A program made the translations under genes and the position numbers. A stretch of 64,000 nt of DNA from Octopus sinensis (Eukaryota): positions 73,904,001-73,968,000 of the forward strand of contig NC_042998.1 of NCBI RefSeq assembly GCF_006345805.1, read 5' to 3'. Shown in pieces: positions 7,349 to 64,000 of the stretch; within the stretch, counting starts at the first letter, position 1; each line of letters begins with the position of its first letter. The notes beneath the pieces are model-generated. The model saw nothing but the letters and a program-made list of their open reading frames with translations. It was not told where the DNA came from and searched no databases.

Positions 7349-7841
7349 TATAAATATAACAATTTAGGAATGGCCTAAACAGGCCATTCGTCCACCAGAA
7401 AGAGCAGCCATAACTCCAACCGCCAAGTAGTGTAATTCGGAAATAAGGTGAAAATTTAAAAACATTTACCCTAATTCATCTTTTATACGATGCATCGTTT
7501 CAGTGTCTTTAATGATAGACCAGCTTAATTAAATTAAATTAAGCTAGTCTACCATAGGTCACACTTCATCAGTAAAAGAACCTGGGAGAGACGGATATAC
7601 ACGAGGCGACTGTATCAATGCCTCGGGAATATCTGTCTTAAAATTTTCAAGACCAACGCATTCGCGCCAAACTTATCGGCAGCAAATATAAACTGCCGAT
7701 TCAATCTCAGAATTAGTCAGAAAATTATCAATTAATCAATTTAGGGTAGCAAAAAATTCAGTAAAAATTTATCGCTACCAGCGGCCTAATGGAAAAGAGA
7801 AAATAGTCAAAGACTAAATATGTATAAATATAACAATTTAG
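7349..7841 (-). mobile_element. Hammerhead-containing non-coding element (retrozyme-like or Penelope pseudo-LTR), 474-bp unit plus 19-bp terminal direct repeat, inside (TA)n
   Basis: TATAAATATAACAATTTAG at 7349-7367 and 7823-7841; (TA)n on both sides; multiple hairpins; complete hammerhead at 7480-7578. Confidence 0.75.
7480..7578 (-). ncRNA. Type I hammerhead ribozyme, complete (C3-G8, GUA cleavage triplet)
   Basis: Minus strand: CUUUUA (stem I) CUGAUGA AGUGU-[internal loop plus 19-bp hairpin]-ACACU GAAA CGAUGCAUCG U A / UAAAAG. Stem III ACGAUGCAUCGU is a perfect palindrome. Predicted cleavage between 7486 and 7485. Confidence 0.9.
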
Positions 7842-9261
7842 ATATATATATATATATATATATATATTATATATATATATATATATAATTTAAAATTTAA
7901 TAAGGGTAGAAATTGATATTAATCAATTAAAACCAGTGACCCAGCATATTAAAAAAATCAGAGATTAAAATATTTTTACATACAAAATTTAAAGGACTGA
8001 ACACTAAAAGTGGACGGTCAACATGCTAGATATAGACGTCAAATCGCTATTTTCCACAAAGAATATGTTCTCAAATAAAAACTCACCACATATATATATA
8101 TATATATATATATTATATATATATATATATATATATATATATATATATATATACGACCTCGAACCCACAAGAGTTAACAAGAGAGTCAGAGACAGGCAGA
8201 AAAAAGGAAAATGCCACTTATATTTGAACACTATAGAAATATTCTTTTAAAAAAAAACTTTTCTTTTAATCTTTCTAAATTTAATTATTTAAATGTTACA
8301 GTTGAAAAAGTCTCAATGACTGAAGCCGGTACTGAAATGTTCTTTATAAAATTATTTAAGCATTTTCAATCCTGACTTGTTTTTTCACATATATATATAT
8401 AATATACATATATATATATATATATATAATATATATATATATTATATATATATATATATATATATATATATATAAAACTGAATTGCGTTTTTACCGCTTG
8501 GTTCGCTTTCAATGCCACTACATCCCGTCCGATTCGCTCCAAAATTTACAGGGACATGTAGAATGAGGTGACGATGCGCGTGGGCTACCTTAGAAATCCC
8601 TATCTTAAAAGGTGTGGTTGCTAGGGGCCATCTTCCTACCTCACCCTATTTCCTCCAGTACTCTGTCACTCTTCATTTGACAATGCAACTACCGTTATTT
8701 AATGTAAAGTCTTCCTCAAATCACTGTCGCTATTTACTCTCTTCCAAGAACATTTTCACTCACTCTTATCGCTTACCTTCCTATACATTTTACTCATGTA
8801 TCTATCAGCGTTCATGGACAGTAACAAATATTACATCGCCATCCCCATCGCCATCGCATTCTATTGTCTACCTGTCAACACACACACACACACACACACA
8901 CACATATATACATATATCTAATATTATATTTTTATGTTTTTGTTTTTTTACTGTTTCATTTCCCTGTTAGTGGTTTGATCTCTAATTTAATTTCTACAGT
9001 GTGCACACACACACACACACACACACACACACACACACACACACCCCTATATGTGGCCCCAGTAGACCCGAATGAAATCGGGTTCTCTTCATCAAAATGT
9101 GAAAAGGGGTCTAGAATTATCATCACCACAACTTATGTTTTTCCTAATGATAATTATCATCGCCACCACCAACACACAATCATGACAATCTTTCTCTTAA
9201 AACAAATCATGTTTACATTGCAAAATATTTCATTTTCCCGTCCTCTCTTTCATATATGTGA

Positions 9262-11751
9262 CCCAGGTTTGGGTGGCCGCACAGCTACAATTAGACAACG
9301 GCTAAAAACATTCGATGTTGATAATGTCTGGATCGTTCCATTCAACCCTTTGCTTTCCAAAACATTAATGCACACATTAATGTTGAGTACTGCAGTTCGG
9401 TGAGATGCATACAATACCTCTGCAAGTACATTAATAAGGGCGATGATATGGCCGTGTTTGTGTTCAGTGATGAAGACCTTAGACATGACGAAATTAAACA
9501 ATTCGTTTGGGGTAGGTATGTATCCTCCAATTAAGCAGCGTGGCGCATTTTTGGATACGAGATTCATCTAAGCTCACCATCAGTTTTCCACCTGAATGTT
9601 CATTTACAGAAGAGACAGCTGGTTTAATTCACAGAGAAAAATGCACGTCAAGTCATTGAAAATCCAAAAGGGACTACGCTTACAGCATTTTTTAAATTGT
9701 GTTCAGTTGATGAGTTTGCTGCTACTCTCATTTACCCTGAAGTACCGGAATATTACACATACAACAACAATAATTGGAAGCGCAGGTCACATGGAGCAGA
9801 ACTTGACAATTGGCCCGGTGTTTCTAGGAAGAACGTCATTGGGCGTGTGTATAATATCCATCCTACCAAACAGGAAATCTTTTTGAGAATGCTACTTCAT
9901 GTAGTTACTGGACCGAAGTCTTTTGCTGATCTTCGCACGGTTGATGGCATCATCTGCGCCACTTACAGGAAAGCATGTTTGAGGCGCGGACTTCTTCTCA
10001 ATGACGACCACTTACACAGGACATTAGCAGAGGCCTCAAATTGTAAACTGCCATGGCAAATGCGTCGATTGTTTTGTAGCATATTAATCCACTGTAATCC
10101 CAGCAACCCTCTTAACCTTTGGGAATCGTTCAGACAGAGCCTATCAAAGGACATACAGGCTAATTTAGCGCAACGTGATGGCAACGACGATGTAATTTAG
10201 CGCAACGTGATGGCATTAATCGACATGGACAGACACATCAGACGCTATGTTATACGCGGTTTAAGTGAATTCCATCTGCCAACACCTGTCCATCATGAAG
10301 CGCCTTTGGATATTGAATACATGTCAGAAAACAACTACAACATTGCCGAATTGACGGAAACAATTACGCGAGATGAACCAAGACTTTTGCCTGAACAAAG
10401 AGAGATTTATAATGAAATTATTGACAGCGTTAGATTGAACCAAGGAAAGCTTTTCTTTTTGAATGCTCCAGGTGGTACTGGTAAAACTTTCGTTATCAAT
10501 TTGATTCTCGCAAAGCTGCGCGCTGAACGTCGATTTGCCATTGCATGTGCCTCAAGTGGTATTGCAGCGACACTGCTTCAAGGCGGCCGTACGGCACATA
10601 GTGCATTCAAATTGCCCATGGACATTGGAAAGAAAGATAATCCTATATGTAATATAGATCGTAGTTCCTCAAGAGCAAGACTTCTTCGTGAATGCAGTCT
10701 TTTTATTTGGGATGAGGCTACAATGAGTAATAAGGCCATGTTTGAGGCTCTTGACAGAACTCTCCAAGATTTGCGTCAAAATACAAAAATAATGGGTGGA
10801 GCTACGTTTCTCATGGCAGGAGATTTTCGACAAACTCTTCCTGTTGTCCGAGCAGGCACTAGAGCTGATGAGGTTAATGCATGTATAAAGCATTCTTTTG
10901 TGTGGCACAGTGTTATCAGTCGCCATCTTCAAACAAACATGAGAGTCCACCTACATGGTGATGTGGAGTCTGAGGCTTTCGCAAAACACCTATTAGATCT
11001 TGGTGATGGAGTTTTGCCTTTCGTTGATGATGAGCATATTCGGTTGCCTTTTGGGAATTTCGTTCCAAATGTAGAAGAACTTATAAGAGCCGTTTTACCT
11101 GACGTCGAAACCAACTTCCAGGATCTCGATTGGCTAAGAGCAAGAGCTATTCTATCGCCTCATAATACAACAGCTCATGCTACAAATAAACAAGTACTTG
11201 ATATGAATCCTGGTGAGATAGTTTCTTTCATGTCCATCGATACAAATAAATATGAGAATGATGCAGTCAAATATCCATCCGAGCTACTCAACAAGCTAAC
11301 ACCTCCGGGACTTCCACCTCATCATTTGTGTTTGAAAGTTGGTGCTCCAATCATGGTGCTCAGAAATATGGAAACGCCTGAAATATGCAATGGAACCCGA
11401 ATGGTTATTAGGAGGATTCAAAGCCATGTTATAACTGCTGAAATTTTGAGTGGACCATTTGTAGGAACAATCAAAATGATACATAAAATGAGTATTTCAC
11501 CCTCTGATGTTCCCATTCAATTTAAACGCTTTCAATTTCCAATAAAACTATGCTTCGCGATGGCAATCAACAAGTCACAGGGACAATCACTGGACATTGT
11601 AAGCATTAACCTGTCACAACCGGTTTTCAGTCATGGTCAATTGTACGTAGCCTGTTCTCGAGTTGGAAATCCACATAAACTCTTCATTCTTGGCAATCAT
11701 GAGCGCACAAGGAACGTGGTTTATCAGGAGGCTCTGACAAAAGAAAACTGA
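9262..11751 (+). pseudogene. Helitron RepHel pseudogene (5'-truncated; HUH Rep motifs absent)
   Basis: DNVWIVPFNPLLSK / NAHINVEYCSSV..YLCKYINKG / GRYVSS..A.WRIFG / TTLTAFF / LRMLLHVVTGPKSFADLRTVDG motifs; one frameshift near 9366; in-frame stops at about 9532, 9625 and 10198. Confidence 0.92.
10207..11751 (+). CDS. PIF1-family (SF1B) helicase domain of the Helitron RepHel; open 514-aa frame
   Basis: Walker A APGGTGKT, IWDEATM, GDFRQTLPV, NGTR, FAMAINKSQGQSL, HGQLYVACSRV. Separated from the upstream part by an in-frame TAG, so expression is doubtful. Confidence 0.8.
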   Translation: MMALIDMDRHIRRYVIRGLSEFHLPTPVHHEAPLDIEYMSENNYNIAELTETITRDEPRLLPEQREIYNEIIDSVRLNQGKLFFLNAPGGTGKTFVINLILAKLRAERRFAIACASSGIAATLLQGGRTAHSAFKLPMDIGKKDNPICNIDRSSSRARLLRECSLFIWDEATMSNKAMFEALDRTLQDLRQNTKIMGGATFLMAGDFRQTLPVVRAGTRADEVNACIKHSFVWHSVISRHLQTNMRVHLHGDVESEAFAKHLLDLGDGVLPFVDDEHIRLPFGNFVPNVEELIRAVLPDVETNFQDLDWLRARAILSPHNTTAHATNKQVLDMNPGEIVSFMSIDTNKYENDAVKYPSELLNKLTPPGLPPHHLCLKVGAPIMVLRNMETPEICNGTRMVIRRIQSHVITAEILSGPFVGTIKMIHKMSISPSDVPIQFKRFQFPIKLCFAMAINKSQGQSLDIVSINLSQPVFSHGQLYVACSRVGNPHKLFILGNHERTRNVVYQEALTKEN

Positions 11752-63780: not shown

Positions 63781-63848
63781 TATTTATATATTCCAGCACA
63801 TGGAATATAGGCGAAACATTTACATTAAACAATTGCAGCGAGGAAGGT

Positions 63849-64000
63849 GTTTGTAAGCCATTTAAGAAACACACAAAAGCACGGATTTTTGTCAGTGAAC
63901 AGGTCGCGGTCTTAAAGCGACGAAAATATTTTGACAAATTAAACTTAAATGTTGAAGTGAATCGAACGGCTTTTGTGTGTTTCTTAAATGGCTTACAAAC
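63849..64000. repeat. Fold-back element (at least 32-bp arms, runs off the window) enclosing a hammerhead
   Basis: GTTTGTAAGCCATTTAAGAAACACACAAAAGC at 63849-63880 and its exact reverse complement at 63969-64000. Confidence 0.88.
63888..63938 (+). ncRNA. Complete minimal type I hammerhead with swapped G3-C8 core (UUU triplet)
   Basis: UUUGUCA (stem I) GUGAACA G GUCGC-GGUCUUAAA-GCGAC GAAA AUAU U U / UGACAAA. 7-bp stem I, 5-bp stem II, palindromic stem III AAUAUU; predicted cleavage after 63931. Confidence 0.82.

Follow-up and report, generated by a model that had tools for sequence, protein, structure and literature searches.

Minimal type-I hammerhead ribozymes are a known component of Penelope-like elements (PLEs). 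Their helix II is at least 5 bp long and has an unpaired base on its 5' side, helix I measures 4-5 bp and helix III is short and palindromic; a U3-A8 variant of the core exists, opposite-strand pairs lie 100-700 bp apart, and most copies are solo (Cervera & de la Pena 2014; PMC4209133). They are located in the pseudo-long terminal repeats of PLEs (Cervera & de la Pena 2014; Lunse, Weinberg & Breaker 2017, cited in PMC6765202). Here we describe hammerhead motifs in a 64-kb stretch of the Octopus sinensis genome (contig NC_042998.1, positions 73,904,001 to 73,968,000; hereafter the window, to which coordinates refer unless another locus is named). With a probability of roughly 0.8, they sit on solo, mostly 5'-truncated 3'-terminal pieces of PLEs or on short non-autonomous derivatives copied by PLEs, belonging to at least six families. 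Hammerheads of this class were described in 2014 and later reviewed (PMC6765202), and those of the octopus are a new instance.

Typical PLE insertions carry at their 5' end a second copy, inverted and 5'-truncated, and favour microsatellites as targets (Craig et al. 2021, PMC8557442). Animal retrozymes have been argued to be PLE derivatives (Li et al. 2026, bioRxiv 10.64898/2026.07.22.740005). For cephalopods, the giant-squid genome paper reported 235 Rfam Hammerhead_1 loci (PMC6962438), and the Naiad PLEs curated by Craig et al. have no hammerhead (PMC8557442); a description of PLE-type hammerheads for octopus was not found in the searchable literature.

Hammerhead motifs and their excess over chance

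Motifs were searched with our own descriptor. It accepts any Watson-Crick pair at positions 3 and 8, tolerates one slack nucleotide at each flank of helix II, and takes helix III either as a hairpin or without a loop. The type-I core tested was C3 U4 G5 A6 N7 G8 A9...G12 A13 A14, with A15.1-U16.1 and an H17 that is not G. Together with other loci, 172 kb of octopus DNA was scanned. The additional loci were from O. sinensis (L001, L002 and L010), O. vulgaris (L007), O. bimaculoides (L008 and L009) and Argonauta hians (L011), and L007-L009 and L011 are a PLE-biased sample as they were picked via a PLE protein. Repeats common to the window and the octopus loci are interspersed and 80-95% identical, which marks the window as DNA of an Octopus or a near relative.

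An earlier note on the window had listed nine complete or partial type-I hammerheads. All nine were found in their places once exact coordinates were checked, but only four are intact copies (sites 1, 3, 4 and 9), the remaining five being truncated or mutated. The complete motifs have the type-I topology, with three helices around the core and helix I open. Site 1 (7479-7579, minus strand) has a helix I of 7 bp (UCUUUUA/UAAAAGA), the core CUGAUGA, a long helix II of ~25 bp closed by AGUGU/ACACU, GAAA and A17. Its helix III is the 12-nt palindrome ACGAUGCAUCGU, and it is the sole match of the strict descriptor in the window. Site 3 (26657-26723, plus strand) has the core CUGAAGA, a helix I of 8 bp, an additional C 3' of helix II and U17; a decayed relative with G12 changed to C is present at L001 21513-21575 (minus). 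Site 4 (36842-36886, minus) is the intact arm of family A (UGAAC CUGAAGA U UGCAU..AUGCA U GAAA GUAC U A GUUCA), with AGUACU as helix III and a U.U or a bulge at the base of helix II. Site 9 (63888-63938, plus) is a complete member of family C with the core GUGAACA. The lengths of stems I/II/III are 7/5/6 bp at site 1, 8/4/3 at site 3, 5/5/3 at site 4 and 7/5/3 at site 9.

The incomplete copies are damaged in different ways. Site 5 (36964-37008, plus) is the mirror of site 4 within family A and fails the descriptor, having U16.1 changed to C (AGUACC). Site 6 (40303-40345, minus) belongs to family B (GACAC CUGAUGA A GGCUG..CAGCC GAAAC); compared with its relatives 3 nt (GUU) are deleted, which removes U16.1/H17 and leaves no in-register H17. 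At site 7 (50578-50617, minus; family C) the core UUGACAA, helix II (GUUGC/GCAAC) and helix III (AAUAUU) are present and the 5' strand of helix I is lost. Site 8 (60881-60899, plus), already taken for a half motif, is indeed the 3' half of a family B hammerhead and has a mirror half at 60855-60873 (minus). Site 2 (25269-25297, plus) is degenerate (UUGAUGA GCAAUGC GAAA CCGCUC), with U3.G8, a 2-bp helix II and no helix I. The helix III ACCGGU previously assigned to it reads ACCGCU there; ACCGGU does occur on the inverted arm of the same unit, which retains GCGAAACCGGUCC at 25232-25244 (minus). The site is similar to the hammerhead in the 3' untranslated region (UTR) of the L001 PLE (GCGAAAGC GAAA CCGG U C). 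Thus, the canonical core is exact at sites 1, 3 and 4, sites 9 and 7 carry G3-C8 and U3-A8, and sites 2, 5, 6 and 8 fail at least one conserved core position. A relaxed scan gave no further good motifs in the window.

BLAST of the flanks confirmed six families with unrelated surroundings, in agreement with the earlier count of at least six. The statement that stem III is palindromic or one base from it holds for five of the six window families, where the palindrome is perfect, and also for most related motifs, but not for site 3, whose helix III ACUCGAAGU is a 3-bp hairpin (ACU-CGA-AGU) more than one base off a palindrome. The variants of helix III include ACGU, AAUAUU, AGUACU, ACAUAUGU, ACAUGU, ACCGGU and ACUAGU. 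The unpaired base 5' of helix II is A in family B, G in family C and U in family A and in L006, a locus discussed below.

The frequency of well-formed motifs in the window is 40-100 times expectation and the excess is non-random. With stems of at least 5/4/3 bp, the window gave 4 matches, whereas 300 dinucleotide shuffles gave a mean of 0.10 and a maximum of 2. Scrambled-core decoys, run on the real sequence as a control for hairpin-rich and microsatellite-rich DNA, averaged 0.039 (n=360), and the true core alone reached 4. The strict canonical descriptor (stems of at least 6/5/4 bp) was matched by the true core only among 540 decoys. Other octopus loci (108 kb) gave 3 matches where 0.106 were expected. 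A simple explanation would be that an AT-rich, hairpin-rich genome produces such strings by chance. The loose descriptor does behave in this way, as minimal stems of 4/3/2 bp gave 4 matches compared with 1.3 per 64 kb in shuffles and decoys, and no motif reached the Rfam gathering level. Because this excess is weak, short-stem matches taken singly are no evidence, and weak ones such as site 2, L001 18836, L002 18601 and L010 9943 may be accidental. For the whole set, chance is already refuted by the size of the excess, its repetition in independent loci, the compensatory substitutions within families and the preference for paired 3-8 cores (9 against 1, see below), and we give it next to no weight.

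Positions 3 and 8 form a pair of the tertiary core, as established by structure and mutants (PMC3884650; PMC11167929). When all 16 N3/N8 combinations were searched in the 172 kb with stems of at least 4/4/3 bp, the pairing combinations gave 9 matches (CG 4, UA 3, GC 1, AU 1) and the 12 non-pairing ones gave 1. All four Watson-Crick pairs therefore occur, including G3-C8 and A3-U8. In addition, the pair has switched twice between related copies. The first switch is in family C, where the two window copies, whose homology begins with the final two bases of helix I, carry GUGAACA and UUGACAA (G3-C8 and U3-A8) and also differ in helix II by a C-G to U-A exchange (GUCGC/GCGAC and GUUGC/GCAAC). These are two compensatory pairs among ~14 differences. 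A third, decaying copy of family C, in O. vulgaris (L007 13487-13690), terminates in (TA)n. The second switch, between C3-G8 and U3-A8, separates the hammerheads in the PLE 3' UTRs of Argonauta and O. bimaculoides (L011 and L009), in which the 3' halves are conserved within an otherwise poorly conserved UTR. Compensatory changes in the 3-8 pair and in helix II were thus seen, in comparisons limited to two or three copies per family. Since 3-8 is a tertiary-core pair, its covariation is not a by-product of palindromic DNA. Together with the preference for paired cores, these substitutions are sequence evidence for selection on the hammerhead fold. Activity of the G3-C8 core of family C is plausible because the C3G/G8C double mutant of the Poseidon PLE PAc from Anolis carolinensis is partly active (PMC11167929). 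Of greatest interest in the data set are the cores with a natural G3-C8 or A3-U8 pair and the two switches; with the natural U3-A8 cores, they give independent evolutionary support for the 3-8 pair known from crystals and mutants.

The hammerheads had been proposed to be of the dimer type. Minimum free energy folds of homodimers contained an intermolecular helix III, with helix II formed within each strand, in 6 of the 11 motifs folded (site 1, family A and motifs of L002, L007, L009 at 3097-3143, and L001) and not in the remainder. For site 1 the predicted intermolecular helix III is 12 bp long. In monomer folds the short helix III fails to form. Sites 1 and 3, in which helix III has 4 bp with a UGCA loop and 3 bp with a CGA loop, respectively, could work as monomers too.

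Carrier units and their relation to Penelope-like elements

Site 1 lies in a 454-nt non-coding insertion (7369-7822, minus) which has no inverted partner. Direct repeats of 19 nt, TATAAATATAACAATTTAG, border it on both sides; the left copy (7349-7367) adjoins (TA)n and the right copy (7823-7841) is followed by (TA)n. This repeat within (TA)n is a target-site duplication (TSD). The predicted fold of the element RNA has a free energy of -145 kcal/mol (z = -6.8, 100 shuffles), and its 5' and 3' regions pair. Two other copies are also single. The family B copy with site 6 (40257-40381, minus) measures ~125 nt, has (AAT)n before it and aligns with a copy at L001 7250-7400 and with site 8. Inspection by eye for internal pol III A and B boxes upstream of the hammerhead, as in Sm-alpha-type short interspersed elements (SINEs), assigned the tRNA-like B box close to site 6 to an adjacent SINE, separated by (AAT)n. 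The family C copy with site 7 (50430-50617, minus) is 5'-truncated 2 nt before the core and its 3' end enters (TA)n.

The other five units in the window (sites 2, 3, 4/5, 8 and 9) are joined head to head with their 3' ends outward. The site-2 unit (25095-25425) consists of inverted copies with arms at 25116-25245 and 25280-25407, and only 9 nt separate it from (TA)n on the right. The site-3 unit (26641-26759, plus) has inverted arms of 21 nt (26641-26661 and 26739-26759) and is directly followed at the 3' end by a (TA/CA/TG)n microsatellite. Family A (sites 4 and 5) forms a near-perfect head-to-head palindrome of 417 bp (36715-37131, centre 36925), in which the arms match over 87 nt at 97% and over 103 nt at 95%, with (TA)n 29 nt from the left end. 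The family B palindrome with site 8 (60773-60963) contains two copies that are both 5'-truncated inside helix II; its arms match over 83 nt at 96%, lie 7 nt apart and differ at the outer end, where the left arm is 18 nt longer. At the centre of this palindrome (60855-60899) is the hairpin of hammerhead helix II (GGCUGAGGGUAUAUCAGCC), so that the inverted copies are joined within a natural hairpin. This may be a preferred template-switch or snap-back site. In the family C copy with site 9 (63827-64000, plus) an inverted 3'-terminal fragment is joined upstream (63849-63880 matches 63969-64000 at 100%), and the unit continues past the window. The same arrangement occurs at L002 12963-13397 and L009 2723-3293.

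Pieces of this kind measure 120-454 nt, have low GC and no open reading frame (ORF), and carry the hammerhead 40-160 nt from the element's 3' end. Runs of (TA)≥5 are found within 30 nt of an end in 4 of 7 window units where ~19% would be expected, the zone making up 10% of the window. The 3' ends of the L002 unit, the L007 PLE and the L007 family C copy also lie at (TA)n. The units account for a class of 'unclassified' palindromic repeats beside microsatellites in octopus assemblies. Outside the octopus sample, L006, a eukaryotic contig of an ENA 'metagenome' assembly, carries identical divergent minimal hammerheads at 12391-12438 (minus) and 12887-12934 (plus), 450 bp apart (AUUUGCAA CUGAAGA U GACAU..AUGUC GAAA CAUG U U UUGUAAAU), with the architecture seen in octopus.

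Palindromic units may also arise as foldback elements or miniature inverted-repeat transposable elements (MITEs), that is, DNA transposons in which the hammerhead-like strings would be incidental and the stems by-products of palindromic DNA. Five of the eight window units are palindromic or have inverted arms, and remnants of Tc1/mariner elements lie nearby. Insertions of such elements have TSDs of fixed size, which is TA for Tc1/mariner, 8 bp for hAT and 3 bp for PIF. The palindromic units showed no TSD of fixed length, whereas site 1 has one of 19 nt and is without inverted repeat. Moreover, the arms are not terminal repeats but reach the centre, and the truncation points vary between units. 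Palindromic DNA also leaves unexplained why the CUGANGA/GAAA core is in excess over scrambled cores, why the 3-8 changes are compensatory and why the same motif occurs downstream of PLE ORFs. The foldback or MITE explanation is thus largely refuted and we consider it highly improbable.

The label of retrozyme, also attached to these elements in the earlier note, requires closer attention. Metazoan non-long-terminal-repeat retrozymes in the strict sense would be head-to-tail arrays of non-coding units of 150-450 bp, each with a hammerhead, whose multimeric transcripts cleave themselves into monomers; after ligation these would give circular RNAs that move with a borrowed reverse transcriptase (RT). 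The units agree with this in their size (120-454 nt), their low GC, their type-I hammerhead and their lack of an ORF. As in animal retrozymes (PMC7229834), the site-1 TSD is far above 4 bp and the fold of that element is strongly self-paired (z = -6.8). Two copies of family B apparently have the 5' end in common. The explanation also overlaps with a PLE origin, given that retrozymes are argued to be PLE derivatives (bioRxiv 10.64898/2026.07.22.740005). Still, Tandem Repeats Finder (TRF) detected no head-to-tail hammerhead array in the window and nine loci (172 kb of octopus DNA), and the label does not hold. The recurrent head-to-head layout cannot give unit-length RNAs by double cleavage, and truncation points differ among most copies. 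It therefore seems unlikely that these are strict retrozymes.

Pfam detected no RT or endonuclease domain in ORFs beside the motifs or in other large ORFs of the window. As, in addition, no PLE was matched by tblastn, the carriers are regarded as non-coding. With neither a PLE ORF nor tandem arrays in the window, they are better described as solo or truncated PLE-derived units than as retrozyme arrays. The connection with PLEs is visible at other loci. The ORF at L002 19713-20801 specifies a C-terminal RT half (YLDD), a CxxC-type (zinc-knuckle) linker and a GIY-YIG motif, and L001 6388-5302 (minus) is its homologue (57-61% identity). Both fragments were missed by Pfam; they were recognised by motif and confirmed through homologues, of which there are 147 at E≤1e-10, many annotated with RVT_1 and GIY-YIG and coming from cephalopods and bivalves. 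RT/GIY-YIG ORFs are present in O. vulgaris, O. sinensis, O. bimaculoides and Argonauta. In 4 of 6 PLE copies examined (L001, L007, L009 and L011), a minimal hammerhead follows on the same strand, 0.3-1.4 kb downstream of the ORF. The L007 copy has it at 11723-11767 (UUGAUAA, GGUUC/GAACC, ACAUGU), ~60 nt before the element ends in (TA)n. In L001 it lies near 5004 on the minus strand (AUGAAUA, ACCGGU), in L009 at 12583 (UUGAUAA, ACUAGU) and in L011 at 12487 (CUGAUGA, ACUAGU). The insertion signature of PLEs is found in the five inverted window units, the L002 and L009 units, and the ORF-bearing PLE copy of L002, which is joined head to head with an inverted partial copy of itself. The suggestion of PLE-type minimal hammerheads is therefore supported by the architecture and by the motifs downstream of cephalopod PLE ORFs, although the PLE trait of a short helix I is only partly present (5-8 bp in the complete motifs of the window) and sites 1 and 3 are less minimal than PLE minimal hammerheads.

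Some observations on the PLE-bearing loci stand apart from this comparison. The O. vulgaris PLE has a long imperfect trinucleotide-rich stretch (ACT/GCT/ACC) between stop codon and hammerhead (L007 11160-11520). In L008 the PLE 3' UTR is replaced by ~1.3 kb of CA-rich low-complexity sequence without a hammerhead, and a 205-bp tandem downstream of the L008 ORF proved to be of the same kind. Two RT sequences were rejected as PLEs: the one at L001 17441-17938 is of the LINE (long interspersed element) type and the one in L005 is part of a long-terminal-repeat retrotransposon.

We propose that each piece carries a minimal type-I hammerhead that was held in the terminal non-coding region of a PLE, and that in master elements the hammerhead would be selected to fold. 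With its short palindromic helix III, it is predicted to cleave most likely as a dimer, in tandem or in trans, which would process the transcripts of the element. Insertion would occur by target-primed reverse transcription with the RT/GIY-YIG enzyme of a PLE, with (TA)n and (AAT)n microsatellites as frequent targets. In the PAc study, the purified protein cut both strands of the DNA and extended both (PMC11167929), and from this we infer that head-to-head units are to be expected. Priming from both cleaved strands would give two cDNAs with their 3' ends outward and their truncated 5' ends meeting in the centre, and hence a head-to-head palindrome. Most window copies would have been dead on arrival or have decayed since.

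Several points speak against such an origin. Firstly, tblastn with octopus PLE ORFs found no PLE ORF in the window, and no sequence shared between the six window families and the 3' ends of ORF-bearing PLEs was found. What ties the window families to PLEs is therefore their architecture, together with the evidence from other families. Secondly, the PLE copies of L002 and L008 (2 of the 6 examined) have no recognisable downstream hammerhead. Thirdly, the association with microsatellites is only modestly significant. Fourthly, sequence from either side of the cleavage site is retained in the genomic copies, which implies that the RNA templates were uncleaved or religated. Published PLE hammerheads cleave poorly in vitro (PMC4209133), and one PLE did not need cleavage to insert in vitro (PMC11167929). 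Lastly, the Rfam hammerhead models gave no match in the window at their gathering score (34 bits), and at E≤10 there was no hammerhead match in short stretches around sites 1, 9 and 4/5. The E-value mode was uninformative for the whole window, being swamped by microsatellite matches to miRNA models. In favour of the proposed origin, Hammerhead_1 (RF00163, clan CL00010), whose consensus itself has a zero-loop helix III, aligns over its full length to the L002 motif with 22.7 bits (E = 0.0011), which is below 34. Annotation based on Rfam thus misses all motifs in the window.

Other elements in the window

A Helitron-type element occupies 8864-11751 (plus). Its ORF (10207-11751) encodes a PIF1-like helicase of 514 aa, with no exact database match and an O. 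sinensis protein (89% identity) as best match. At the DNA level the element is 93.7% identical over 2.9 kb to L001 10347-13251, a copy in which a Helitron_like_N domain is found too. What remains of a mariner (Mos1-type) transposase, with the domains HTH_48 and Transposase_1, is present at 37116-38425 (minus), and a broken Tc1/Tc3-type transposase at 35716-36439 (minus) has its HTH domains in two overlapping frames and is interrupted by microsatellites. The mariner ORF was used to obtain the ENA loci L003-L006, which have only mariner in common with the window and were excluded from octopus counts. The mariner DNA is 91-93% identical to the ENA 'metagenome' contigs ERZ25073763, ERZ25073769 and ERZ25067889, which share no other repeat with the window. 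Either horizontal transfer of mariner or an origin of these contigs from the host DNA of a different animal may account for this.

Copies of a tRNA-derived SINE family were found at 38463-38518 (plus), 39693-39908, 30866-31035, 32654-32874, 41120-41546, 55203-55423 and 21070-21268, as well as at L001 6380-6620. The copy at 41120-41484 is a tandem pair with a period of 184 bp, and the sole Rfam gathering match in the window is the partial tRNA head of a SINE (31 bits). The microsatellite load is extreme, with 131 (TA)≥5 runs (e.g., 7095-7357, 12729-12969, 15148-15595, 46625-47251, 48563-49512 and 59057-59533), and in E-value mode it produced hundreds of spurious sub-threshold matches to miRNA models (mir-297, mir-3149). 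Of the two CT-rich tandem repeats (27107-27556 and 29334-29769), one has a period of ~141-143 bp and the other is (TCTA/TCTG)n-like; both yield long spurious ORFs of the 'LSIYLS' type.

Comparison with described hammerhead systems

With these loci, cephalopods join the animals known to have PLE-type hammerheads in large and varied sets. Present views of PLEs and of hammerheads are unaffected. The head-to-head units with outward 3' ends are the genomic product expected if PLE enzymes prime on both DNA strands, as purified protein does in vitro (PMC11167929). If some families are still transcribed, the units would yield long perfect RNA hairpins in an animal that edits A to I massively. It is conceivable, although we hold it rather doubtful, that octopus genomes are among the hammerhead-richest known, with ~10^5 motifs in many young families and a laboratory of core evolution, if a density taken from 172 kb of partly PLE-selected DNA holds, including a window that was itself flagged for looking dense.

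Among the systems outside PLEs, the hammerheads of the amphibian satellite, of axolotl (HHR_Amex1/2) and of schistosome Sm-alpha resemble families A (AGUACU) and C (AAUAUU) in having one closing pair with a palindromic tetraloop and in requiring dimers, and HHR_Amex2 has the U.U at the base of helix II in common with family A. However, these hammerheads belong to long tandem satellites or to pol III SINE-like units and make conserved contacts between loops 1 and 2, whereas helix I of the octopus motifs is open and loop-loop contacts cannot be assigned. Metazoan retrozymes (PMC7229834) are closer, as they are small (170-400 nt), AT-rich and non-coding, contain type-I hammerheads, have long TSDs and self-paired RNA, and co-occur with PLEs. 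Yet they are defined by tandem arrays and circular RNAs, and the octopus units are head to head. In PAc the hammerhead belongs to a PLE, as in octopus, but overlaps the start of the ORF; the hammerhead of octopus PLEs comes 0.3-0.8 kb after the stop codon, near the 3' end.

The best agreement is with the minimal hammerheads of PLEs. The octopus motifs differ from these in a helix I of 5-8 bp compared with the published 4-5 bp, in the occurrence of all four Watson-Crick 3-8 pairs, in the long helices of site 1 (12-nt helix III, ~25-bp helix II) and in an apparent density of one well-formed motif per ~16-25 kb, which is above published counts elsewhere for what is a small sample. Both share the type-I topology, a helix II of at least 5 bp preceded by an unpaired 5' base, the short palindromic helix III and the U3-A8 variant, and in both the motifs fall into heterogeneous families of mostly solo copies with opposite-strand pairs 100-700 bp apart.

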